Below are positions 1-58,700 of a stretch of 64,000 nt of DNA, in pieces. A model generated the notes under the pieces. That model searched no databases. It saw nothing but the letters and a program-made list of their open reading frames with translations, and was not told where the DNA came from. Source of the stretch: Bugula neritina (lineage: Eukaryota > Animalia > Bryozoa); contig OZ037765.1 in NCBI GenBank assembly GCA_964035545.1, positions 18,724,995 to 18,788,994 on the forward strand, written 5' to 3'. Position 1 is the stretch's first letter. Every line of letters starts with the position of its first letter. A program made the position numbers and the translations under genes.

Positions 1-1480
1 GATAAATGCATGCAAATCGCATATTCTACAGCAAAGCACATTTTCTGAAGTTGCAATGTTTACACTTGCAGGTTTTACTCACATGTTGTGCTACAGTTTA
101 TCATCATTTACTAAATCTGACAGCTCAGCATTATGCTATACACTATATTCATGTATATACAAGAAAGGTATTTGATGCCTACAATATGCTGTTAGCAGCT
201 ACTAATTGCTTTCTCACTGGGCTGCCGTAATCAGATGCATTTACTGATTGCTAAACAGGGCATTGTGTGATGACTGGAACTGTCAACTGATGAAATACAC
301 TTGCTTGTTATCTTCTTGGATAAGATCAATATTTTCTTATTTATTGCAACACAGCTAGAGAGAAATGTCTTATTTGTACATTTTATTTGTTATAATACAT
401 CTTAAATCCCTTCATTCACTGGTAAAAGTAACATTTGACCCTAAATTATACATTATACAATATTATACAATATTTGGTGACGAGCTTTAAAATTACCATG
501 GCTAAACCTATCAAAAGATGGAACATGTCATTTAAATTAGTTTTTTCTTTTTGGGGTTGTTGTTTATTTTTGGAGTTATTTACAAGCAGCTTTTCTTGAT
601 GCTAATTTGTGTTATAACTGTAATTAAAAAATATATTCTAAATTCGTAAACATAAAACAATTCCAAACTAAACAAAAAGATACAAAATGGTCAAAAACAT
701 GTTAGAGCACAGAAGTTATGAAGTTTGCTGGTTTGTGCAAGTTGTCTATAATAGAAAATTTAACATTCACGTAACCCAAGTTCTAAATCAGGAGATGAAG
801 CAATAGTATTGTGATTGCACATGCGTTGTGTTAAATAAGTATTATAACTTCTCGAATAACTGCAAATGTTTGTAGATCAAGCAATACTCTGATCCTAATA
901 GAATGCTCCAATCAAGTTCAAGTGTAGCTTCATGCACTAATTTTGAATATCTAATTAAATTGTGACACTATAATAATAATCATTAATAAAGTAAATATAG
1001 TTTTTAAAATTTAAATACATAAAATTTATTTAACTAAGAACTGACATTGCCTTGCTTCCAGAGTTTTCTTTTTTTTACACACATTTGAAGCTGCATTAGT
1101 TGTTACACAACAGTGGCTTCCCATATCTTTGCACTAGTTTTCTGACTGCTTTAATAGTTATGAGGAATTAGAGATAGATAATAGACATATACTGTCAGAA
1201 GAAATTATTGTTACCAGCTGCTGCTAGAACATTGTGCTGTATTACATCATAAAACAGTGTTTTCTAGGTGTTGAAGTGGCTATTAGAAAGTACATAACAG
1301 CTCAAAACATGCTCATTGGATGCCTTCAATGATTGCAGTAGCTTAGGTTTCCAGCTTATTGAGCAGCAAATTTAGTTTACGAAGGAGCATATAGATAAAT
1401 TTTTGTATGCATGCTGTATCAGTATAATTTGTATGCTTGTAGAGCAATTAAAGCAGTTATCTTCTCTCTGTGTATTGTAG

Positions 1481-4069
1481 GTGGTGGTTGTCATATCCAT
1501 ATTATTCATCATCATGTCAACTATAGGCTTAACACTGAACACTCTGCCTGAACTGAAAGTAAAAAATCCAGAAACTAATCTTCTGGAGGATAACAAAGCG
1601 TTAGAATGGGTAGAGACCATCTGCATCTGTTGGTTCACTCTGGAATATATTCTACGGTTCTGGAGTTCTCCTAACAAATGGAAGTTCTTCAAGGGATTTC
1701 TGAATGTGATTGACCTGTTAGCCATCTTACCGTACTTCCTGTCACTTGGCTTGCAGCACACTCAAAACACAAAGAGCACAATGCAGTTTACAACAGTCCG
1801 CAAGGCGGTACAAATCTTCCGTATTCTTCGAGTATTACGAGTACTCAAGCTAGCTCGTCACTCCACGGGTCTCCAATCCTTAGGCTATACTTTACAAAGG
1901 AGTTATAAAGAGCTTGGGCTATTAATGATGTTCTTAGCGATAACGGTGTTGATATTTTCTAGTTTAGCCTACTTTGCAGAAAAAGATGAGCCAATTACTA
2001 AGTTCACAAGTATTCCTACAACCTTTTGGTGGGCAGTAATCACCATCACAACTGTAGGCTATGGGGACATTTACCCTACAAGTACATTTGGCAAGTTTGT
2101 GGGTGCATCTTGCTGCATCTGTGGGGTATTAGTCATTGCTTTACCCATTCCAATTATTGTTAACAACTTCGCCGAATTTTACAAAGACCAAAAGAGAAAA
2201 GAAAAAGCTCGAAAACACAATGAGATAATTAAACTGAAACGGCATAAGTTTAACCCAGTAGCTAGTGAGTACACTATGACAGGGGCTGTTCACCAAATGA
2301 AAGATGCAGTACTAAGTCAGTTTCCTCCCAAATTCAACTATTCCAACACATTCCACCAAATAAGCAACGAATTTGGTGTCCACAGCTCAGCACCTGTTAG
2401 CTACACACAGGTGATCACTCTATTTTACTTTGTTTGCACTTCTTAAAGAAATTTTTGAACGCAGACACTTGTTTTTATCCAGAGTTTCTGAATTATTATT
2501 AACTTATTTTTATTGTGATTGATAGATTTTATATGTTGCCTACATAAGCAGTAGGTTAAATTTTTCATATAAATATTATAATTACCTAATTCGTAAGCAG
2601 CGACTCCTTTAGGATTTGTCCCCTCATCAGTGAGGAAACAGAGGCAACTTGAACTACATCTTTGCAATGCCAGAAACGTTATTACTTAATTACAAAATTT
2701 TAAAAGCTAGTTTGTTGATGTATGTCAGAGTGGTAGATCCAATCTATGGGTTGCAAGTCTTCCATTATGCAAATAGCTTAAACTAGCCATAATATGGTGA
2801 AAGGTGGCAGTTGCAGAATATCCATTATGGTCTTACAACTTAATCTGTGGACAGCAACTAATTAGTAATTAGAGATTTGTTCTCTCATGTATTATATATT
2901 TCGAATTGATTATTAGACATCATACATTAGTTATTCTATGTAGTACCAGATATATTATAAATTATATATGTTATATATATATATATTACATATTATACCA
3001 TATTCAATTTGTCACTCAATTAGAATAGTCTAATTGAGTGACAAATAGAAAATTATATATGTACCCTATATAGTATGTTATATATAATATATGTCTGGTA
3101 TTACATATATTAAGTAATGCTTGTAACAGAGTTAGTAGATGGTCATTATATAACCCAAAATATTATAATTTGCTGCTAGAAAGAGGATTCAGAGGTTGAC
3201 ATGCGGCAAACAAGCATAAAAGAGTCCAATGGAGATATTTCAAAACAAAAAGCAACTTTGAGTAAAGTTGAAAGCTGTGGCGAGGGTTAGTATCTTTTAA
3301 AAAGAGAATAATGCATGAGTTAGATAGGCAGCAGTTTTAAACCAGCTGCTGTGTGTTGTCAAGTATATATAAAAATTTCAAGCTGATTCCAACTTTATGC
3401 AATGGTTCAAAACTGTAATTGTGATAATAGATATTCTTTCTATTATATTTACTATGTTTTAAATAGCTCTTTTATAGATAATTTGAAATAATATTTAAAA
3501 CAAAAATTAAACTTTTGTTAAAAATTATCATGAAAACAAATGATCATAACATCTAATGAAAGATACTGCATTTTGCTAATATCTCAGTGTTGCAACACAT
3601 TTGAAGGATTTTTCAGCTACCTGACAAACATTTTTTGTAATATATTTCAGCTATACTTCAAATTATATTTGTCATAGCTATAGAATGACATCTATAACTT
3701 ATATAACTGATATTTGAAAATAGACTATAGTTTTCAGTGAGCTTACATCACAGAGAGGGGGCGGCTGGCTTTGGAATTGTTCAAGTTATCAACTAAAGCT
3801 CTGTTTATAGTAAAATAATAATATATTAAGAAATATAAAATGTAGAAAATAAATGAGAAAAATAAATTTTTTCTCACCTATTCTCATCTTCTTCGCTTTG
3901 TCCTGTTCAGGTAGCGGAAGGAGAAAATTAAATGCTATATATTATATATTATATCTACTAAGCTTACCAATATTGTATTGTTTTTTGAGATTATTGAGAA
4001 GTTATCTCACCAATGATTCTGTTTACAGATGAAGAGAAAGTTGGATTTATTCAGACTACTGAAACGTAA
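1481..4069 (+). CDS. Shab: Voltage-gated K+ channel, Shab/Kv2 family, 3' part. Exons 1481-2410, 3180-3285, 4029-4069; the N-terminal/T1 exons lie upstream of the window.
   Basis: The exon after the tgtag acceptor encodes S1-S6, including S4 ([15 protein letters not shown]), the TVGYGD filter, and the Kv2-typical [22 protein letters not shown] and [13 protein letters not shown]. Phase-compatible GT-AG joins (2411, 3180, 3286, 4029) lead to ...IQTTET-TAA. The last two small exons are less certain. Confidence 0.93.
2938..3105. mobile_element. Palindromic fold-back/MITE-like element in a Kv2 intron
   Basis: Central inverted repeat TTTGTCACTCAATTAGA / TCTAATTGAGTGACAAA (~3008-3046), with outer arms ATGTAGTACCAGATATATTATA / TATAATATATGTCTGGTATTACAT. 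Confidence 0.6.
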
Positions 4070-6204
4070 CAAGAAATTCAGAGAGTTTGAGAAGGACTAA
4101 AAATTCACACCCACCTTGCAGAGAGTTAACAATATTATATACAAGACCAAAGTAAAGTGATGTCATATTTATTTTCTCTAACAAAATAATTAGCAAATAT
4201 TATGTAATTCAATTGTTAAATATGACTATTACTAATAATAACATAAACTATATTTCTATCTTTCAAAGCAACAATTTTTATTTTATTTGAGTTTATTGAA
4301 TGATCACGAAGGAACTTTTTTGTAACATGTATTTAAAAATAATTCCAAATCTGTTGTATTAATTTTTCAACTGCATGCACAATGGTTTGATGTATTGTGT
4401 AAATTGTACTATTAACTTATTGCATAAAATGCTTAGAGATACACTGTATAAAGAGTGCACTGGTAATTATTTATTGTAAATACTTTATTTTGATCTCACC
4501 ATAATATGTTATGTAATCAAAGATGTATCTATATATACTGCTATACATTTGGCTTGCTGGCCACCACAAAAGGCTAAGTACTGTAACTGTTATTGTATTA
4601 AATTTCCTAGCAGCACATTTGGTTTATTTCAAAATTTTATCGATCCCTCAAATATAATCTTCCACCAATTTTGTGTATTATATTAATAATTAGTGTGAAT
4701 AGGGTTGTTATTTTAGTACCTACACAGAAAGTTTTTTATTCCTTAGTGCAAGACTTGTGCATTCTAACAAAATACTTTGCTACATCATATAAGTTGACAA
4801 ATGAAGGCTATATAATAGCCTTAAACTCTTACAATATACTCAAAGAATGATTTGTAACACAGTGTGTATGGCAGAGAACTGCTTGTATATATTATTATAT
4901 CAACTGTTCAAATATGCTCTCTACATAGTTTTTTTCAATTTGAATATAAGCTTTATATTTAAAAAAAAATTAAAATACTTTTGGCTTCGTGTTGTTTATT
5001 ATAATGCTTATATTATGAATTTTCAATTATTTTGCAGAATAGCTTTGTAATAACTATGTTCTTTACTGGGAGCTACATTTGTTCAAGATTGCATATATAT
5101 TATCACCAATTACTGAGAATTTTTAAGACTACAGACTAAATTAGAACTATATCCATTAAAGGCAACTTATTAAACTCACTTAGCTGCTCATCCTGGATAT
5201 AAATTTTATATTCTGTGAATATAAATAAGAGTTGTCTTCCCATAAAGTGTTGCTCATTGGCAACTTTCAGATCGACTCGGCTTTCGTGTCATAATATATA
5301 CACAGCAGTAATTAACAGGTGGGACACTATATTATAGTTAATCATGTCACAGCATAAAAGCCATGACAGACTCAACATATTGCATTATATTACATATTAC
5401 AACACACTACCACTTTTTATGAGGGCGTTTTATTTTTGTGCTAATCATACAAAGTATTATGAATTGTAAACAGAACTTATAGTACTACGCAATCTCAGGC
5501 ATAATTATTGCACAACTTGTTGATTAGTAGCTTTTTAAAAACTCAAATCAAAGTTATTACCTCCCAAAAATATTCCTATTGTTTAAATGCAGTAAACAAA
5601 AACTGTCCACTTCACTAGGTTATGGTTGAGAATAGAGCAGTAAGCTGTACTATATTTAAGAGAACTCATCAGTAGTGCACTGCTTTATTTTCCTATATTG
5701 TCATATATACTAAGAGAGTCAAGTGTTAGAGATATGTAGCTTAGTTCTCCTCTCTTTTACTTCTGCTCTGTTTGGGACATGGCAGGAATCAGAAATTACC
5801 AGCCCAAACTCTGTCTCAAATCTGGCAGTGCATGTGGCTAGCAATGCTTTCAACATTATCATTTGACTTGGCAAATTCAGGATTTTAAATCACATATACT
5901 CAGCTAAGCTCTTTCTAGTCACCCTTGCTCTAATAGAGATCTTGTATTATAGCTAATACAAATTGATGTTTGTCTAGTTCAAACTCTGTCATGGTTTCGA
6001 ATAAAAAAATTATCAGTAAAATTTGAAAAAGTGTAATGTCTTTTAATTAGAGATTGCAAAAACTAGAATAGGCTACAGGTGTATATTCTATTTCAGTTGA
6101 ACAATGTATATAGTAGCTATAGTGTAAAGAAAGATGTTTTCACACTTGTTACCAAATGCAAAGAAAAACTCTCATTTTTAAGCATGTCTGGCAAACAAAG
6201 TTAA

Positions 6205-10185: not shown

Positions 10186-10581
10186 TGACGTCACGTGGTA
10201 TACAGCAATACTAGGCGCCGGCTAGACTGCCCAGCTGCAGTGCATGATTGAAATGACAGTGCCAATGTCAAATACGCCCCACCCTCTGAAACATTTCTTA
10301 GACTGAGTTTTGAAAATAGTGGAAAAAACGCAGCTTAAAAGTTGAAACATCTGTGAAATAATCTTTGAGAGGATTTTTGTCTCCAATGTTACACAAATAG
10401 TAAGCCTTTTGTTGTAAAGTCAAATGTCTATAGCTGAACCCAGGTGGGGAAACCCTTTGCACTCATAGAGTTTTATAACTACGATACACTTGATAGCCCT
10501 AATCTATTCCACTGCATTCCAGCGATTGTTTTGTTGGTTAATGTGGGCGGTGCTTATTTAGAGCAACTGCATGTATATAAA
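10186..10581 (+). promoter_or_regulatory. Id/emc promoter: CRE/E-box, GGCGCC, GC box and TATA box
   Basis: TGACGTCA overlapping CACGTG (10186-10197), GGCGCC (10214-10219), GTGGGCGG (~10543) and TATATAAA (10574-10581), about 100 bp upstream of the ATG. Confidence 0.65.
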
Positions 10582-10683
10582 GGCACGCAGCGTTTCACCT
10601 CCACATTGCATCGGCATACTTCGCTTAGAGAAACAAACTCTACTATTCTTTTTCACATAAACATACTTCAACTAAATCTCATC

Positions 10684-11356
10684 ATGAAGGCTACATATTT
10701 TGTAACAGCTCCATCAGCCAGATCAATTGATTTGAGCCGTGTACACCGAGAAAGTGGTAAAGTTAGAAAATCTACACACCACGACGCTAAAATGCAAGAA
10801 GCAGAACTTTACTTCAAACTCAAAGAGCTAGTGCCTACTTGTTCAGAAACCGATCAGCTGAGCAAAACACAACTTCTGCAAAATGTTATTGACTATATAT
10901 TTGATTTGGAAGACACCTTAGAGCTAAACATCACTCGAGATGACCAAATTTCCGAGTCTAAATCTCCATTTTCAGCAGTTCTTCCTCTTTCAGAGAGCTT
11001 TACTTACAACAATCAAACACATGAGGTAAGCATCGTCATCAGTGTAAATTTTTATATTTCACTTTGGCATGTACTGAGAGAATTTCAGTTTTTTTGGTGT
11101 TGGTCTAGTCCTTTATATACTTGCCAATTTATGGCCAAGTGATGTGCCTAAAGCTAACTGAAACTATTCATAATCATTTCATAAGTTTAACTAAAGTCTC
11201 TACCAACTTTTATTTTATAAGCTTGAAAGTTTCTTCTTAATTTGAGATGAAATACTTGCTAATTTTCTGAACTTTTTACTTGAATATAACGAATGCTTAT
11301 CAAACTGTTTTATCTTTTAGCAAATGGATGTTAAGGATGGCTTGAGAAAGGTGTGA
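10684..11356 (+). CDS. emc: Inhibitor of DNA binding / extramacrochaetae-type HLH protein without a basic region. Exons 10684-11025, 11321-11356; ~125 aa.
   Basis: MKA- start typical of Id/emc; HLH LYFKLKELVP...LSKTQLLQNVIDYIFDLEDTL; GAG|GTAAG donor and TTTTAG| acceptor in phase 0 to QMDVKDGLRKV-TGA; AATAAA at 11814-11819. Confidence 0.9.
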
Positions 11357-49751: not shown

Positions 49752-52700
49752 TTATCCACACTTGCCTTCAGAGTCCATAGGAAACCTTCGAACTCTTTTC
49801 ATAGGTACAGGAAACAGTCTTCCTTCATTAATTATATTCTTGAAGAGTTTCCTCCAGTCTGGCATGTGGGTGGGAGTCGGTATAGGTTTCACGAGCATCC
49901 GGAAAGGAAGTGGACTTTTGAAGAACTTTCCCTGCTCGCTCTAGTGGAAAATTTTTATAAATATTATATCAGTAAAATATAATCGGTTTCAACAACAATT
50001 ATCAAAGCAAATATTTATTCTATCTTATATTCATTAGCCAAGATTACTTAATGTTAATGTGGGAATAGTTGCTACTGATTACATTATACTTGATGTTAAA
50101 GAATTTCTGACCCACTTCATTTATGCAGCACCAACGTATTTGTATTTATCTTAGCTATCGTATACAGACTATTTGAGGGTTGTATGCTCAAACAATCTTG
50201 CTTTATAAAAAAATTATAACAAATGAAGTGTGTCAGGAATTCTTTAACAAAAAGTTTATAGACTTAAAATAACAAAAATAGCTACAAAACTAGGAAGGCA
50301 ACATTCTTTTTGGATAAGAGTGAGCAACAAAAACTTCATAAAAAATGTTGAAAATAGTTCAAATTCACAATAATTATTTCGCTACATAACGGTAAGTAAT
50401 TATATTGTAATGGATTTCAGTAGTGCAATTAACAATTAGTTATATATCGAAAGGGTCGACTCTATGTTGTATATTATTGTGGAGATCGACTACATCGACT
50501 TCCAGTCGACTTGTATCTTATGGTCGACAGTGGCACCACTAATACCAGCCAATCAGGAAGGACTGTTAATTGATAGCAGGTGGAGCTAGCTACTCGTAGT
50601 GGAAGCACGCTAAGTAGCTAAGCCGGGCAGAGCAGCTTGGGACTTCGCTTAGAGTAGTTGTGTGTAAAGGCTCATTATTATGTAATCGTTCAATTCATGT
50701 TAGCAGTAATTCAATTCTTGTATCTTGTAAATAATAAACTTATCATAACGTAAATAACCTGGTGTAGTAGCTTTGTTTAAGTCGACCCACATAATATAGT
50801 GAATTGAGAAATTCACTACAATATGTATACCTTTCTTTGCAGCATATAATCTACAGATAACTTCATCATGTTGATCAGATTTTGAACTTCATAGACTCTC
50901 AAAGCACTACATCCAGGTGAAGAGGCACCGGAATCTTCTAGTTTCTTGAGCTCATTAATCTCCTTCATTACAGCAACACTTTCCTTGTGCACTTCTGACA
51001 GCATATCTGGAATATCTGCAGAATAAACCAGTGTGTTGTGTGTGTGTATGTTGTGTGTGTGTGCGTGTGTGCGTGTGAGTGTGTGTGTGTGTGTGTATGT
51101 GCGTGTGAATTGTGGTGTAATGGCTATTAATAGTTAAATATAACTTTAAAATGCTTAAAATGCTTTTGGTAAACCCCTTGCTTAGTACAGCTACTACTCA
51201 CTAGTTGCCTAGTAGTAGCTGAACCCTTTGCTTACACACCATCTCAACAGACAACCAACCTATCACACATTTACTTTATTGCATTCATGTAAAAATACCA
51301 CAATGTCTAATATCATCCTACCAACAACCATGCTGAGATCATCAGAAGCATTAGCCTTGGCTTCTTCAGTGTATACCATAACAAAATCAAACCCATTCTA
51401 AAAAGAAAAATGGTTTTATGAGGTCTTAAGACACAAATATATACTGCTAAAACTGCGACATTGTGAAACACTTAATGTGATGATGAATATGGGAATTCTT
51501 GATCGAAATCTAAGATTTGTATCATTTGAGTCTAACTGTAGAATCATTCTGTACGATTTATAGCAGTAAGTGTCCATCATAAATAAACTGAAAGCTGACG
51601 TGCAACTGGTGAATAATCAAATGCTAATAATGTCGAGCAAATATTAAAACACACTACAAATAAAATGTCTTTTAGTCAGTGTGAGAAACTTGCAGCCTTA
51701 AACTCAGACATTGTTGATGCATGCAAAATGATTTGATGCTTTATTTTGTCAGCTTGCTAAATGCACAAGTAAAGATTGAAGGGTTTATGCAATTTTTTTG
51801 TAGAATCAAATTGCTTGAGAAATAAAAACAATTACTGTGAATTGGGTATTAGGGCACTTTATCACAGCTGCAATAAGAAAAATAGGTAACCAAATATGAC
51901 TCAAGCTTGAAACTTTTAGGAACCAATTTTATATTAGTTAGATGTATGGCTAAAGAAACTGAAATCAAAAGAATCTAAAAGCGTAAAAACAACGTTTTGT
52001 AAGCATTAAAGTTCATACCTCTACTAGGTTAGTGTGAGGCTGAATAAGCATTCTGCTTTCATAATTTTTCACTCGAGAACACTGATCATGAGACTGGCAG
52101 GGTGGGTACAGCAGAGACTTGTCTACTGTTACAAGGGCATTCTCTTCTAGGTTCATGGTGCATCTACAATAAAGTATGTAATGTATTCAGTTTACTAGTG
52201 ATCAGTTTAGTACTATTACACTGTTCATACTTTAGAGACTTTCTTCTCCTATCAAAGCACACCATGTCTTCTACATCTAATACAGTGCTCCCTCATATCT
52301 CACAATTCTAGTTCTTACAAAATTCCATAGGTCATGAGAAGGGCTTGGACGCCTCCCCTTTTTGTGGCCTATGTATGTGTATGGGGACAAAATGCATGGC
52401 TAAATTTAATGGGTCCGTAAATTAAATCTGGTGTTCTACTATGTCACGAATCGAGGTTTCGCGACCAGCAGCTCAGTGGGATATGGAGGGAGTACTGTAT
52501 TATAAAACTTCAAAGAATTAATATCAGATAAACATATTGTAATTAAACAAATACAAAATGATAATACTGCAACCGACACGATGGCAAAAGGAAAAATCAG
52601 GAAGCATCAATGTATGGAGTATCAACGCAATCTAACAATTGAGAGCTGATCAAATAAATAAATTTTCACAGCAATTAGTCACATCTCTTATAACTAAAAA

Positions 52701-55700
52701 TCATACTGTTCCATTTTTATATGCAACTTATATTTGTTCTTTTCATCGAGTTGATTAAAAAACACTGTATGCGAATACGAAATGAAAATGTACCTTCTTA
52801 GAAAGATGTACTCTCTCAAACCAGATGAAAAATTTATCATCCAATGAATGCGTTCCAAAGAGCCGATAGTCTTCTTACAAATCATCTCAGTTTTGCTGTC
52901 CCATTTTCTCCTACTTATTGTGGAGTTCTATTGTGTAAATAATAAAAGTGGATTAATTGTGTACATCAGCATAACACCAACAATTAAGATAGTTCCTTAA
53001 CCTATTTTCATAACTAGATAAAAAATGAATCTTGCCTGCATGCACTAAAAGGCCATTTAAATTTTATCAAATAGTGATATAGTGTAGTGAGTAGTGCAAG
53101 TACAAATACAGGAATCGCCCTCTCCCTATTCTTGGAATACTTAGACTCTTATGTAGCAACCAATTAGCAGCTCCGGAAGATATGCTTCCGAGTCACGTGA
53201 CACTTCCCGGGTTAATAAGATTATATCACGTTGTTGTAAGCGGAGGCTTGTAGTAGTAACATGTGTTAGTAGTTGACTCTTGTATAGGATAATTTGATGT
53301 GATGTTTGTTTTATGCTTTATTGTGGATAATAAATATAATTACTCGACAGCTACCCTAGTAATTGATAACAGAATAACCAGCTAACTATACGCAAGTAAA
53401 TAACTCACGCTCAGTAATTGCACAAATTACTACAGTGGTGGCAGCAGTGGGATCTTGCGTATAGCAGTCATGGCAGAAGACGGCACGGAGCTACCCATTC
53501 CACTGAATGAAGGTGAGAGAGATAATGTTGATATACCTGTGGAACCAGTGGTGTTAGATGAAGAAGTGAGAATTCTTAGAGGGCATGGTGAAGATAGATA
53601 CCGGCTGAAGGCGCCCACCTTCACTGGCGAAGAAGCAGTGGAGCAGTTTATTCAAGAATTCCAAGATGTGATGGAGATTGCAGAATGGCCGCCAAGGGTG
53701 GCGTTGCTAAAGCTCAGGATGGCGCTGACGGGCAAAGCTAAGCCGTACGGAGCTGGACCTGACATAGACGGAATCTTTGCTTCCCTGCGGGCCCGTTTTG
53801 GCATCTCTCCCATAGATGCGCGGGCCCGTCTACAGAGGATGCGGCGTGATCCTCACACGTCACTAGAAGAGCACGCTGCCACGGTGTACCCATTAGCGCA
53901 GATCGCATTCCGCGATCTGCCTCCGGTACACCGTGAGAGGTATACCTATGATGCCTTCGTGCAGTCCATCAACGACTTGGGGCTCCACCATCAACTCCAA
54001 GCGAGGGGAGTCACCACAGTCGAAGATGCACTTGCGGTGGGAGAAGCCTATCTCTTGGCGACTCATATGCACCGCAACCGCGTGGCCTCCCGCCAGGTGA
54101 CCACGGAGCACTCTACTGCTCACACCGAAGTAAATGCGGAACCCTCCGCGGTGGCTAATGTGAACCAGATGTCACTAGTGTCAAAAATCTCACAGATGAC
54201 TGACATGCTAGATAAGCTGGTCACCACATTAGCCTCCCCAAGCCAGGTAGATACTGCCCGTGAGCCTTGCGGGCCGCAGGTACAATCACCAGACATGGGG
54301 CACCACTTCTGCTGGGAATGCGGAAGGCCAGGACATTTCCAGAGAAACTGCCCTCAACTCCCACCAGGGTTAAACTACCCCGGCCCGCAGATGTTCCCAC
54401 CTCCTGCGGGCCGTCTGTAAATCACCCAGGGAGGCCCGCGCGTCTGTCGCCCCGCTGGGCGCCGCGCGGAGATGCTGTGAAGTGGCGACCCCCGCGGCAA
54501 GTAGGCTCAAGCCACTCGCCGCCTGGGTCCTCTACGCCACTCCGGCACCAACACGGAGCCGGCAGACGGTTGACCACAGAGCCTGCGAGGGAAACGGTAC
54601 AAGCGCCGCAAGGCGTACCGCCCCAACCTCGGCAGCTGGTCAATAGTCGCCGCCAACCGTGGACCCCTCGACCCACAGCGAGGGAGGTGCAACCACGGCA
54701 CACTCAATTGCAGCCGCACGGAAGTAGCTACTTCCTGCCAGGGAAGTTAGCCGGCAAGCCTGCCAACTTCCTCCTGGACTCCGGCTGCACCACCAACCTC
54801 CTTAGCCGTCAGTTCTTTGACACCCTCAGCGCTAAGGTCAAGGACAGGTTGGCACCGTACGAGGGGGATCACGGCACCTTGGCAGACGGGTCGTGCATTC
54901 CCTTCTACGGCATTATTGAGCTAACTGGTTACGTCCGTAACCAGGCCATCCAAGAGACGTTTATCGTCGGGCAGCTCAACGAGGATGCTATCCTCGGGAT
55001 GCCATTCTTACAACGACACGGTTGTCGCATCGATTTCAGTAAATCTGCGATAATCATGGGCGACAAGGAGCTCGCTTGTGTCGATAAGTTTGGTCGTCCT
55101 CTAGCGGGAGCAGTGCAGGTAGTACGGAGCTGTACTATACCAGGCCACTCCCGGGCTACCGTCCGCTGCAAGGTAGACGGTGGCCAAACCTCTAAGTTGG
55201 GAGTTGTCGAAAGTACGCACTCGAGAGTCCAACTTGCCCGTAGTTTTAGCCGGCTCACGGGGCAAGGAGAGATCTCAGTGCAGTGTGTCAACCCCTTCTC
55301 AGAGACAGTAGACCTACCACCCAGATCCATACTGGGTCGCTTCCATCCTGTCCAGGAGGAAGCCATTGGGCCGTCGTCGGGAGCTACGACGGAAGGTCCT
55401 CAGCAGAGCCCGTCTCGAGGGCGGAGGACCGTCCCAACCCACGCCTCCCCTCCTCCAGGGACGCGTGGCTGCACAGGCAACGGGAAACGCCAGGCTATGG
55501 CTAGGTTGCCACATGGGTACAGTGAGGCGTTCAGCCACACAGACCACGGAGCCCGCCTAAATAGAGCAGGCTGCCGTGAGGTACCGCGGGCGGCGAGGAC
55601 CGCCCCTGCTCAGCCACTTCAACAGAGGGCTGACACGCCCCCGGAGGCTGCCCAGAGCCTCCGCGCCAAACCTGTATGGGCTGGTAACGTTGGGGAGCTG

Positions 55701-58700
55701 CCGAAGCTCCAGGAATGCCTTCCTGGGGTGGTAGCCGACGTGTACCGAGCGAAACAGGAGGGGCGACGACCCAGTAGTACACAACGGCGACAGGGATGCG
55801 CCGAGTTACGGCTGTACTGTCAACGTTGGAGCTCTCTGCGGGTCGGGCCAGATGGTCTGCTAACCATGACCTTGGCCACCAACAGCAGACAGCCAGTCAG
55901 GAAGAGGGTTGTCTGCCCAGTTGCCATCCGCCGGAAGTTGATACAAGACACTCACGAGGAGACTCACGGAGGAGTCCAAGGGGTGGTCACCAAGCTACAA
56001 CTCCGGTGGTACTGGCCTAACATGGAACGGGATATCCGACGCAGAGTGAGACGGTGCAAAGTCTGCCAGACCAACAAGCATAGCCGTCTCCCTGGTGAAG
56101 TGGGGCGGCAGACGCATTGTGTGAGAAGGTCTCGGCAGGCGGAGACTGTCAACCTGGCCGGAAACACCTCCATGACACGTCAGGAAGACTTGGCGAGGCG
56201 AGAAAGGCCACTTCCGTCCTTGAAAGTGCGCCCACCGCCCCCAACGTCAAGCCTGCCATCATCACCACTTCCGGAACCAGAAACAGGTCCGGAAGTGCAA
56301 AAACCCCCCGTGGGAGGGGCTCCGCAAGGAGATGCCAACATAGGACCAGCACCACACACTAGGCAACTTCCAGCGTGTCTCAGAGACTGTGTACGTGACC
56401 GCGGTATAAGCGGCAGTAACAAAAGTCTAGAGAGGCCTCGCGTAGGAAAACAGGCAAAGAGCCGTGGGAGTTGTGATCACCACGAGAATCTCAACTTTTG
56501 CCTCGGCGGAATCTCACACGAGATTCATCCGCTGGAAGTGAAAAGCCCTAGTCACGTTTCACAACCACGCTGTCCGGTCTTTTCCTATGTTGATGCAGTC
56601 GAGAGTAGACGTGCCAGTAAACAGTAATCAGATACCACTTTCATTCCAAAATGTCTTACTATTCTGGATCGAAGGATCACACTCGAGTGACCACCTCCCG
56701 GTCACGAAACCAGCCAACCTCTCTGTCTATGGAAGAAGAGCCTGTAATGGAGAATGGCATACCAGTAGTACTCCGCCGACGACACCGTTGGGTGTCACCC
56801 ACGACAGAGAGGAGAATTGAAGAAGCCTGGGGACCCAGTGGACCACACCGAACCTGCCAGGTCTGCTTTGAGGAGTGCCCGTCGCACCGCTCCTTGCGTT
56901 TACATGTGGATGCCCATTTCCTACTCCACTTCTGTCCCTGCGGCTTCCACGACGTCTACCCGTATCCCGTGACAGTACATAAGCTAAGCTGCTTCGCCGG
57001 AGAGAACCACACTGTTGATGAAGACAGTTTCCCCCTATACCTGGATGCCATCAAACCAGTCATCAGGAAGGCTATTACCCTGGCCGCACTAACGTCAGGG
57101 TTTCACGTACTGATACTATCTGCCCGCCATAAGTCCCCTATGGTTCAGGGCCCACCTCCTACCCCCGTCAACCCTAGCGACACCCCAGAAGTAGAAGAAA
57201 CAACCATATCCCGTATCACGGAGACCCCCGTAACCCCACCAAGACCTAGCCAGCTGGCTAACGTAGAAGAGCGGCTTCTAAGACTGCAAGCCGAATTCAC
57301 ACAACTTGCCCCTGACTTGCTGGATACGACGACAGGTCTATACCAGTTGAAAGACTCAGTGGGACGACTGAAGAGGCGGCTACGGGCCCGACAGGCTCGA
57401 CACCGAGCACGGTCGCTACAAGAAGCAGAGTCCAACCAATGAGAATGCCTGGGGTAGGCACCTTCGTTGAGCTATAGCTCGTTTAGGATATGACGAGCGC
57501 TCCGACATTGGCCCGCGTGCTGGTAAGCACCCTCTCTCTTAATAGCTGACTAGATGTGTGTGATCGATCACCCTGTTGTCTTCTAATGTAAACGTTGTCG
57601 TGTTTAACTATTTCTTTTCTTACTCTTTGTGGGTTTACTTATGAATATTTCCTTTTTGGATTATTGTATGGTTTTTCATTATGTTTTTTATTATTGTGTT
57701 ATCAGAAAGTAGGGCTTTCTGCTGGGGGGGACGGTGTAGTGAGTAGTGCAAGTACAAATACAGGAATCGCCCTCTCCCTATTCTTGGAATACTTAGACTC
57801 TTATGTAGCAACCAATTAGCAGCTCCGGAAGATATGCTTCCGAGTCACGTGACACTTCCCGGGTTAATAAGATTATATCACGTTGTTGTAAGCGGAGGCT
57901 TGTAGTAGTAACATGTGTTAGTAGTTGACTCTTGTATAGGATAATTTGATGTGATGTTTGTTTTATGCTTTATTGTGGATAATAAATATAATTACTCGAC
58001 AGCTACCCTAGTAATTGATAACAGAATAACCAGCTAACTATACGCAAGTAAATAACTCACGCTCAGTAATTGCACAAATTACTACAATAGTAACATACAA
58101 TGTCCAAAGAACTGGAAAGCATAAATTGGTAATTTCAATATTATAAAACTTAGTCTGTGTTAACCACAACAGTTTTAGCACACTAACATGCTGAGAAATA
58201 GACATACCTGCAAGGAGAAAAATGTTACTGCTGGAACATCTTTGTAACTGCCATGTACTGTAAAATAACACATTTTATAATATTTCAACTTTAGGCCCAC
58301 TTATCACTGATAGTAGAAAATGCAATAATAATTTATTAAATTAGATTCTGCTAAAAAAATTGTACAACACACACTATTGAAACCAACAACCACTACAAAT
58401 ATTAGCAATGTGTTAAACTCACTTTTATACTCCTTGGCAGGGCTGTCTTCCTTAGCCCGAGACCATACAGTCATAGCAGAGTACGCTTTCTCAAACGCCC
58501 AACCACTCAAATCATTCTTAAGAATGCTGGTTTCATAGCTTTCTTCTGAAGAATCGTCCATCTTAAAACTGGCATTCTCTAGAGTGTTGGTAATCTTTGA
58601 AGTCTCAACTTCAGACATTTCTTCCTCAGGGCTTATTTCTGATGGTGTAGAGATATTTTCTTGAGGTAATTCTTTAACAGAACTCTCCTCTTCAGCAGCC

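Follow-up and report, generated by a model that had tools for sequence, protein, structure and literature searches.

RLG_Sabrina_SA of wheat and barley is a semi-autonomous Ty3/gypsy element that encodes GAG and protease without reverse transcriptase (RT) and integrase (IN); it is multi-copy and long-lived, evolves together with its autonomous partner, and has been read as contributing its own proteins (PMC9744471). In Triticeae centromeres, RLG_Quinta is paired with RLG_Cereba: Quinta arose a single time from the autonomous family, retains GAG together with a domain whose function is unknown, and shares its primer binding site (PBS), LTR termini, and polypurine tract (PPT) with the autonomous partner (PMC11302176). 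The element analyzed here, from the bryozoan Bugula neritina, resembles RLG_Sabrina_SA in that GAG and protease are kept while the RT and IN catalytic domains are missing. It differs from that plant element, which has neither the integrase zinc domain nor an ORF3, in that its host is an animal, that it has a −1 frameshift and still carries an HHCC domain, and that it includes a third gene, which contains an intron; it differs from RLG_Quinta in possessing a protease. The locus had originally been put forward as the best candidate in the window for an undescribed system, a reading that is not supported, because semi-autonomous Ty3/gypsy elements with GAG-protease or with GAG and an autonomous partner are known in wheat (PMC9744471; PMC11302176) and the Bugula lineage is an animal variant of that described kind. 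What is new is an animal (bryozoan) case of the semi-autonomous lifestyle, combined with an uncharacterized accessory gene.

Among animal LTR elements, mouse IAP I-delta-1, HERV-H, and chicken EAV-HP carry shared internal pol deletions and have spread by complementation in trans. The Bugula element is like them in its shared pol deletion, but they are vertebrate retroviruses; to our knowledge, constraint on their retained genes is not generally reported, and we know of none with a zinc-finger ORF3. The 3′ env gene of errantiviruses is reached by splicing, and Ogre keeps an intron inside a retrotransposon. The Bugula ORF3 recalls both, yet in contrast to errantivirus env its product lacks both a signal peptide and a membrane segment and matches only generic C2H2 fingers in fold. 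The mobile elements of bryozoans are, as far as we know, almost unstudied. The insert described below is very probably a young member of a semi-autonomous Ty3/gypsy-type lineage of B. neritina, which means that a lifestyle known from cereal genomes exists in a lophotrochozoan animal too. The evidence is unusually clean: the lineage has one origin, its copies have deletion junctions in common, purifying selection follows the protein domains, and cis signals are shared with RT-bearing relatives.

The window, by which we mean the whole 64,000-nucleotide stretch of B. neritina DNA that was analyzed (assembly GCA_964035545.1, contig OZ037765.1, positions 18,724,995 to 18,788,994, forward strand), contains a complete LTR element at 53083-58086, an insert of 5,004 bp. 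Its boundaries and cis signals are as follows, in window positions.

53079 to 53082, forward strand: 5′ copy of the target-site duplication ATAG, identical to 58087-58090
53083 to 53434, forward strand: 5′ LTR, 352 bp, with TGT...ACA ends and 0 mismatches to the 3′ LTR
53436 to 53453, forward strand: PBS, TGGTGGCAGCAGTGGGAT, beginning 1 base past the 5′ LTR
57697 to 57734, forward strand: conserved block whose end is the PPT; the RT-bearing relative L006 has almost the same sequence here
57724 to 57734, forward strand: PPT, GGGGGGGACGG, a purine run adjoining the 3′ LTR
57735 to 58086, forward strand: 3′ LTR, 352 bp, identical to the 5′ LTR at 352/352 positions
58087 to 58090, forward strand: 3′ copy of the target-site duplication ATAG, identical to the 5′ copy

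The direct TG...CA LTRs, the 4-bp duplication, the placement of PBS and PPT, the CCHC gag, and the retropepsin are those of a Ty3/gypsy element, and every feature named in the original prediction (LTRs, target duplication, PBS, PPT, gag, frameshift signal, and core-less pol) is present. The interior of the 5′ LTR aligns with the LTRs of other RT-less copies, and its last ~10 nt are also common to RT-bearing relatives. The PBS is kept in all loci compared, RT-less and RT-bearing; we take it to be complementary to the 3′ end of a tRNA-Leu, the window containing no tRNA gene to compare it with.

The first two reading frames are linked by a predicted −1 frameshift, ORF2 lying in the −1 frame relative to gag.

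53470 to 54420, forward strand: gag, 316 aa, one CCHC zinc knuckle
54369 to 54375, forward strand: heptamer G_TTA_AAC of the −1 frameshift, in frame with gag, kept in most family members including L006
54381 to 54413, forward strand: predicted 10-bp GC-rich hairpin after a 5-nt spacer
54267 to 56627, forward strand: ORF2, the pol remnant, a 786-aa open frame read as a Gag-Pol fusion via the frameshift
54738 to 55016, forward strand: retropepsin (protease) domain, with Pfam and PDB matches and the motifs LLDSGCTTN and AILGMPFL
55056 to 55361, forward strand: unnamed beta-rich domain 3′ of the protease (AF2 pLDDT about 80-95)
55599 to 55625, forward strand: deletion junction 1, RT and RNase H gone, located by comparison with L006 and P0150
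55917 to 56084, forward strand: integrase N-terminal zinc-binding (HHCC) domain, Pfam PF17921 (E=1e-14), with a PFV integrase match
56100 to 56224, forward strand: deletion junction 2, integrase catalytic core gone, about 0.9 kb of L006

GUUAAAC followed, after a 5-nt spacer, by a 10-bp stem is also how the frameshift site of equine arteritis virus is listed (PMC3835772). In the Bugula element the hairpin appears in both the minimum-energy and the centroid predictions, and it is kept across the RT-less clade, where the only changes are G-U compatible. Retropepsin and Integrase_H2C2 are the only named domains of ORF2. When the element was searched by tblastn with full-length relatives as queries, no remnant of RT, RNase H, or rve was found in any frame at E<=1. 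The AF2 model of the protease, whose motifs are conserved, matches DDI1 and retroviral proteases; the beta-rich domain that follows has no Pfam match and is common to RT-bearing relatives, and the His and Cys residues of the HHCC domain are conserved. Deletion 1 corresponds to about 1.3 kb of L006, or residues ~390-915 of the full-length relative P0150. The order PR-RT-RNaseH-IN, absent from the window element, is present in its relatives P0150, P0152, L006, and L008, and the element is therefore a derivative of a family with that order. Inspection of both deletion boundaries in L006 for GT...AG, which would point to splicing as the origin of the deletions, revealed no clean sites, the boundaries being blurred by divergence.

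A deletion of this kind could have arisen in one autonomous element and left a single dead-end copy. Such events are common in LTR elements, and the nearest copy, L001, is 99.4% identical to that in the window (0.6-2% diverged). However, L001 is a distinct copy from another sample, one of the near-identical copies in B. neritina samples, and it carries the same deletions. The same architecture with both pol deletions recurs in the diverged copies L002/3, L004, L009, L010, L011, and L012, even where identity in the ORF2 protein is only 58-63%, and the deletion-junction sequence is common to the RT-less copies. In a tree of the protease and following domain (12 RT-less rows, 12 RT-bearing rows, and 5 outgroups), the RT-less rows formed one clade (support 100/98) nested among the RT-bearing ones. 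A one-off fresh deletion, which the original prediction had named as its refuting case, is excluded by these shared deletions, shared junctions, and the single clade, and its probability is practically negligible; the expected recurrence of the same deletions in several copies was borne out. Judged from the sequence comparison, the RT-less lineage demonstrably arose once, from an autonomous gag-pol-ORF3 family via two internal deletions. We infer that it lost its own RT/RNase H/integrase core long ago and that relatives must supply these functions.

Selection on the retained genes was assessed by pairwise dN/dS on local alignments that included dead copies, with bootstrap intervals; broken copies were compared by in-frame local alignments with stop codons dropped, and for copies with an intron the exons were compared by reference, with the intron-less reading supplied by the window copy. 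The RT-less sub-lineages are separated by a dS of about 0.4-0.8. The lowest ratio was that of ORF3, the most constrained gene of these elements (about 0.1), while gag gave 0.18-0.42 among RT-less lineages and the protease 0.14-0.37 within the RT-less clade. Ratios of 0.39-0.61 were obtained for ORF2 residues 271-447, which include the post-protease domain, and of 0.32-0.72 for residues 455-606, which take in the integrase zinc domain. Values close to neutral were obtained for the pre-protease stretch (0.64-1.1) and for the C-terminal tail (0.5-0.9). These ratios demonstrate, at the level of coding sequence, clear purifying selection on gag, protease, and ORF3 during RT-less diversification, as had been anticipated, and weaker selection on the post-protease and integrase zinc domains. 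Three open frames under selection also rule out a TRIM or LARD, elements with no coding capacity.

The same constraint could be explained if the element were a passive parasite, mobilized in trans with its own proteins dispensable and its apparent conservation due to recombination with autonomous elements or to RNA-level selection. Retroviral and Ty Gag can work in trans. Moreover, ORF3 synonymous divergence reaches 1.7, compared with 0.5-0.7 in gag and pol for the same pairs, and between the window copy and L001 it is 0.07 in ORF3 and 0.01 in gag and pol, suggesting module exchange by recombination. On the other hand, the RT-less copies are monophyletic in the protease and following domain, so that there has been no recent import of this part, and the gag and ORF3 identities to RT-bearing loci are lower than those among RT-less loci. 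Constraint also tracks protein domains, folded domains being constrained and proline-rich linkers near neutral. We regard passive parasitism as unlikely and favor a semi-autonomous lineage that would use its own Gag, at least in part, and its own protease.

The third gene and its features lie as follows.

53510 to 53518, forward strand: candidate splice donor AAG/GTGAGA, exon end at 53512, phase 1, gag codon 15
56651 to 57442, forward strand: ORF3, 263 aa, open and intron-less in the window copy, with 133 homologues
56675 to 56676, forward strand: exon-exon junction, at which the other sampled copies have the conserved ORF3 intron
56828 to 57130, forward strand: ORF3 zinc-finger domain, a C2H2 finger followed by a CxC...H...C finger and, after that, helices
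57251 to 57436, forward strand: ORF3 C-terminal long helix, heptad Leu pattern, Arg-rich end

A spliceosomal intron interrupts ORF3 in every sampled copy except that in the window, where its absence is exact to the base. In L001 it is a 180-nt intron (GTGAGT...TTTCAG) at exactly the equivalent of 56675/56676; L004, L010, and L006 have about 290 nt at this site, and L002 has the intron with a mutated donor. The "intact extra ORF" of the original prediction is therefore open in the window copy, but only through loss of the intron seen in all other sampled copies. Because the intron is missing exactly, the window copy was reverse-transcribed from spliced RNA, and it stands as a natural record of a spliced RNA that was retrotransposed. 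With intron and acceptor gone, this copy may be unable to make normal ORF3 mRNA. All loci, the RT-bearing L006 among them, keep the candidate donor at gag codon 15, and in protein P0011 gag residues 1-14 are fused in phase to ORF3 residue 9 onward; we infer from these sequences that splicing probably proceeds from this donor.

The intron loss also bears on the age of the insertion. If the lineage were extinct, the identical LTRs would have to come from gene conversion or a recent duplication of an old insertion, and a point in favor is that six of the eight sampled RT-less copies are broken, all three frames being open only in the window copy and L001. Yet exact intron removal needs a recent RNA-mediated event, and extinction is also at odds with three open frames in a 5-kb element, a perfect 4-bp target duplication, and a second open copy 0.6-2% away. 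We consider extinction highly improbable; the identical LTRs, together with a distinct copy 0.6-2% diverged elsewhere, point to recent activity of the lineage.

ORF3 exposes an unannotated accessory gene family, encoding a two-zinc-finger coiled-coil protein that has no Pfam family and carries a conserved intron. In its predicted organization, tandem zinc fingers are followed by a coiled coil and a tail rich in arginine: the AF2 model shows a beta-beta-alpha finger and a helix at residues 201-262 with pLDDT up to 97, the zinc-finger Cys and His residues are invariant, and a profile comparison with the PDB yields matches to tandem C2H2 fingers. A Pfam search returned nothing, and a fold search with the model gave nothing at E<=0.001, only local C2H2 fingers. 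An envelope was considered and rejected, given a hydrophilic N terminus, a maximal 19-residue hydropathy of 1.47, no signal peptide or membrane segment, and no fold match. The gene had been thought to be the element's own regulator. It is, however, inherited from autonomous ancestors and carried by RT-bearing relatives, so it is not specific to the RT-less lineage, and its domain is also found in several gypsy families (L014) as well as in other organisms. P0193 is a distant ORF3-domain protein; a protein search with P0218 returned only unnamed proteins. A scan of JGI metagenome contigs with ORF3 peptide patterns yielded no relatives, Bugula samples being evidently absent from that collection. 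By analogy with complex retroviruses, ORF3 might be a Rev/Rem-like factor made from spliced mRNA that chooses element RNA to escape splicing and be packaged, with gag, protease, and ORF3 kept for the element's own packaging identity as a true satellite of the autonomous family. Searches of Pfam, folds, and PDB profiles revealed no homology to any known regulator, and we find this proposal unlikely; if true, ORF3 would give an invertebrate Ty3/gypsy clade its first regulatory gene in the style of complex retroviruses.

Helpers were sought by PBS, LTR termini, and PPT, the criteria applied to Quinta and Cereba (PMC11302176). The expectation that shared signals would identify a partner held for two RT-bearing relatives in the same genome, L006 and L008, in which the PBS and the 3′ end of the LTR match those of the RT-less copies exactly or almost exactly; in L006 the PPT block is nearly identical as well. 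Since these signals are the same, RT-bearing relatives of the same genome are the likely helpers. L006/7 and L008 are themselves broken by frameshifts and stops, and in Bugula samples no pol >735 aa was found at >=50% identity. Because the loci fetched include no RT-bearing copy of the close family that is intact, a live helper is assumed. A scan with the 22-nt LTR end plus PBS returned only unrelated sequences, including the gypsy-like loci L018, L020, and L034; L013 is a full-length distant relative whose sequence stops soon after pol.

In the semi-autonomous cycle that we propose, the element's Gag would form at least part of the particles that package its RNA, its protease would mature them, and RT, RNase H, and integrase of related autonomous elements would copy and insert the element. 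ORF3 would normally come from a spliced subgenomic mRNA starting with the first 14 gag codons, and would act on nucleic acid to the benefit of the copy encoding it.

The contig is not of human origin: the host DNA is 33% GC, a Kv2-like exon that lies in the window differs clearly from the PDB's mammalian Kv2.1 chains, and near-identical copies of the element are found in B. neritina samples.

The insertion at 53083-58086 of the window (+ strand) spans 5,004 bp, with a GC content of 50-60% versus ~33% in the host DNA, and carries the following features.

53083-53434 and 57735-58086, + strand: LTR pair, identical at 352/352 positions, termini TGT...ACA
Both sides of the LTR pair: perfect target duplication, ATAG
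53436-53453, + strand: primer binding site (PBS), 18 nt, separated from the 5′ LTR by one base
53470-54420, + strand: gag, 316 aa, with a single CCHC knuckle
54267-56627, + strand: ORF2, the pol remnant, in the -1 frame to gag
54369-54375, + strand: in-frame frameshift heptamer G_TTA_AAC, with a 10-bp GC hairpin 5 nt downstream
56651-57442, + strand: ORF3, the zinc-finger accessory gene, 263 aa, open
57724-57734, + strand: purine run of the polypurine tract (PPT), adjoining the 3′ LTR

The anatomy in the original prediction was confirmed throughout, including the LTRs, target duplication, PBS, PPT, gag, frameshift signal, open ORF3, and a pol lacking reverse transcriptase (RT) and the integrase (IN) core. 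The PBS is presumably complementary to tRNA-Leu. In ORF2, the only recognizable domains are a retropepsin and the N-terminal zinc domain of integrase (HHCC), and tblastn with full-length relatives as queries revealed no remnant of RT, RNase H, or the integrase catalytic core (rve) in any frame of the element. The same arrangement, GUUAAAC separated by 5 nt from a first stem of 10 bp, is listed as the frameshift site of equine arteritis virus (PMC3835772). Upstream of the insertion, at a distance of 2 kb, is a GT dinucleotide microsatellite with ~39 repeats (51031-51107).

An RT-less element could be a single fresh deletion derivative of an autonomous one or a member of a replicating lineage with many copies sharing the same deletions, as originally predicted. 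Near-identical and related copies were drawn from two JGI samples, whose records are labelled AY690838, an accession cited for the mitochondrial genome of Bugula neritina; homologues numbered 133 for ORF3, nearly all in these two Bugula samples, and 48 for ORF2. The diverged loci L002/3, L004, L009, L010, L011, and L012 share 58-63% identity with the window copy in the ORF2 protein and 72-77% in gag, and all of them retain the order gag, protease, HHCC, ORF3 without RT or the IN core. Relative to RT-bearing relatives (loci L006/7 and L008; proteins P0130, P0150, and P0156), two deletions were identified, one that removed RT and RNase H (~1.3 kb in L006, corresponding to residues ~390-915 of P0150) and the other the rve core (~0.9 kb). 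In the alignment, a derived sequence at the first junction is common to the RT-less proteins, the RT-bearing relatives run on into RT, and P0141 represents an intermediate form. A maximum-likelihood tree was then built on the protease and the next 180 residues with 12 RT-less, 12 RT-bearing, and 5 outgroup rows (P0133, P0134, and P0155, which do not cover the region, were excluded), and in this tree the RT-less rows form one clade (support 100/98) nested inside the RT-bearing family. The diverged copies with the same deletions, the common junction sequence, and the single clade rule out a single fresh deletion, and the RT-less form is a lineage with a single origin.

The closest copy, L001, is 99.4% identical to the window copy over gag-pol and 97.8% over ORF3, where the codon differences are 13 synonymous and 4 non-synonymous. 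Among the sampled RT-less copies, all three frames are open in these two only, and each gene of the remaining six is interrupted by 1-5 stops or frameshifts. The L001 assembly (1-4770) is circularly permuted, in the order ORF3-LTR-gag-pol with one LTR, which probably reflects LTR collapse in assembly; a circle with a single LTR or a tandem array is a less probable reading. About 1.2 kb downstream of the old RT-less copy in L002, six tandem 117-nt units lie inside a 384-aa ORF (10465-11349).

Selection on the retained genes was estimated as pairwise Nei-Gojobori dN/dS within the RT-less clade, using in-frame local alignments projected onto window codons with stops dropped, so that the values include the decay of dead copies. 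The original prediction expected dN/dS below 1 in the ORFs of a replicating lineage, and such values were obtained for gag (0.18-0.42; window pairs ~0.2, 95% CI 0.12-0.34), protease (0.14-0.37), and ORF3 (~0.1). Within ORF2, dN/dS was 0.39-0.61 for residues 271-447, with intervals below 1, 0.32-0.72 for residues 455-606, which include HHCC, 0.5-0.9 for the C-terminal tail, and 0.64-1.1 for the proline/arginine-rich stretch preceding the protease. The protease motifs LLDSGCTTN and AILGMPFL and the HHCC residues are all intact. An AlphaFold model of the protease and linker has pLDDT values of 80-95 across residues 13-226, and its protease part resembles DDI1 and retroviral proteases in a structure match. 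A second, beta-rich domain is predicted with confidence after the protease (ORF2 residues about 264-365, window 55056-55361); it is also present in the RT-bearing relatives but is not named in Pfam or PDB. These data indicated that the retained genes are under constraint after RT loss. In the same pairs (window versus L004 and L009), dS is far higher in ORF3 than in gag/pol (~1.7 versus 0.5-0.7), and the corresponding values for window versus L001 are 0.07 and 0.01. This several-fold excess suggests module exchange by recombination.

ORF3 also yielded direct evidence of an RNA intermediate, through an intron that adds to the original account. In L001, the gene starts with a mini-exon of 25 nt (ATG and 8 codons) followed by an intron at 140-319 (180 nt, 38% GC, GTGAGT...CTCTTTCAG), and precisely this stretch of 180 nt is missing from the window copy, in which the exons meet at 56675|56676. 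All other sampled copies, whether RT-less or RT-bearing, have the intron. The ORF3 exons of intron-containing copies were compared by reference: L004, L010, and the RT-bearing L006 keep the mini-exon, donor, and acceptor around an intron of ~290 nt, the donor is mutated in L002, and at all loci other than the window the ORF3 alignment begins only at residue 9. The joined mini-exon is absent from every homologue among the matches listed. Since the intron is missing so exactly, the window copy was reverse-transcribed from RNA from which it had been spliced out. A second splice form may be represented by P0011 (261 aa), in which gag residues 1-14 are joined in phase to ORF3 from residue 9 onward; at the joining point in gag codon 15 (window 53512|53513, within 53510-53518), a consensus donor, GAAG|GTGAG, is conserved in all loci. 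Judged at the protein level, P0011 appears to record a spliced subgenomic mRNA for ORF3, either as a copy in the genome or as a called ORF, and the sequence fits an mRNA that would borrow the gag start, as seen in many retroviruses. The window copy may fail to make this mRNA because the intron acceptor is gone.

The idea that ORF3 is a special gene of the RT-less element did not hold, as RT-bearing relatives carry it too (50% identity in L006/7), with more distant versions in L008 and L014. The latter (2359-5635) belongs to a different Bugula gypsy family, 42% identical in the IN region, in which a zinc-finger gene of the ORF3 type follows integrase, so that the accessory gene predates the element family studied here. 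A family alignment revealed a first, C2H2 finger with invariant C69, C72, H85, and H89, a second with invariant C95, C97, H110, and C114, and then a proline-rich linker of variable sequence leading to a C-terminal helix that is conserved. The AlphaFold model (mean pLDDT 63) comprises a beta-beta-alpha finger, two helices, and a helix at 201-262 (pLDDT up to 97) with a heptad Leu pattern, ending in RLKRRLRARQARHRARS. ORF3 has no signal peptide, membrane segment, Pfam family, or fold match, and generic tandem C2H2 fingers were the sole matches to a finger-domain profile. When 1.8 billion representatives were searched with a profile, 128 proteins were returned; these include unnamed proteins, 150-600 aa long, with versions of the finger domain that are ~30% identical.

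Autonomous/non-autonomous pairs in wheat have been judged by the PBS, PPT, and LTR termini they have in common (PMC11302176). When cis signals of RT-bearing relatives in the same samples were compared with those of the RT-less clade, these relatives, candidates for the partner anticipated originally, were found to share the PBS, TGGTGGCAGC(A/G)GTGGGAT, and similar LTR 3′ ends (ATTAC(T/A)ACA versus ATTATAACA). In L006, the 38-nt block that ends in the PPT is almost identical as well, and the first LTR bases are similar (TGTAGTG versus TGTGGTG); the LTR interiors are no longer alignable. Since the RT-bearing copies obtained are broken themselves and the fragmented assemblies of the Bugula samples yielded no long pol belonging to the close family, we only infer a live helper. 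L018 and L020, gypsy elements of unrelated metagenomes with pol ~30-33% identical, have the same 22-nt LTR end and PBS.

In vertebrates, IAP, HERV-H, and EAV-HP have deleted forms that spread in trans. Semi-autonomous Ty3/gypsy elements are known in wheat (PMC9744471, PMC11302176), where RLG_Sabrina_SA encodes GAG-Pro but neither RT nor IN (PMC9744471), and RLG_Quinta, derived once from RLG_Cereba with the same PBS, PPT, and termini, encodes GAG and an unknown domain (PMC11302176). The Bugula lineage is of the same kind, in a new phylum, and differs in its retained integrase zinc domain, frameshift, and intron-bearing zinc-finger accessory gene. Its genomic RNA would yield Gag and, by -1 frameshifting, Gag-Pol*, and particles would be matured by the element's protease. 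RT, RNase H, and IN would be supplied by related autonomous elements that recognize an identical primer, PPT, and LTR ends; the helper's integrase assembly may take up the HHCC fragment, and ORF3 may act on nucleic acid. As gag, protease, and ORF3 are constrained, the element's own proteins would be expected to favor its own RNA, via cis-preference or sub-family-specific recognition.

Elsewhere in the window, a Kv2/Shab-type potassium channel exon (1481-2446) differs clearly from the mammalian Kv2.1 chains in PDB; together with the copies of the element in the Bugula samples, this identifies the contig as bryozoan rather than human. Its 2054-2167 portion gives an above-threshold Rfam match (65 bits) to the K_chan_RES RNA-editing signal, which may reflect only conserved pore-region coding sequence. 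A 232-aa ORF at 10444-11142, with a helix-loop-helix DNA-binding domain, is probably an exon of a host bHLH gene.
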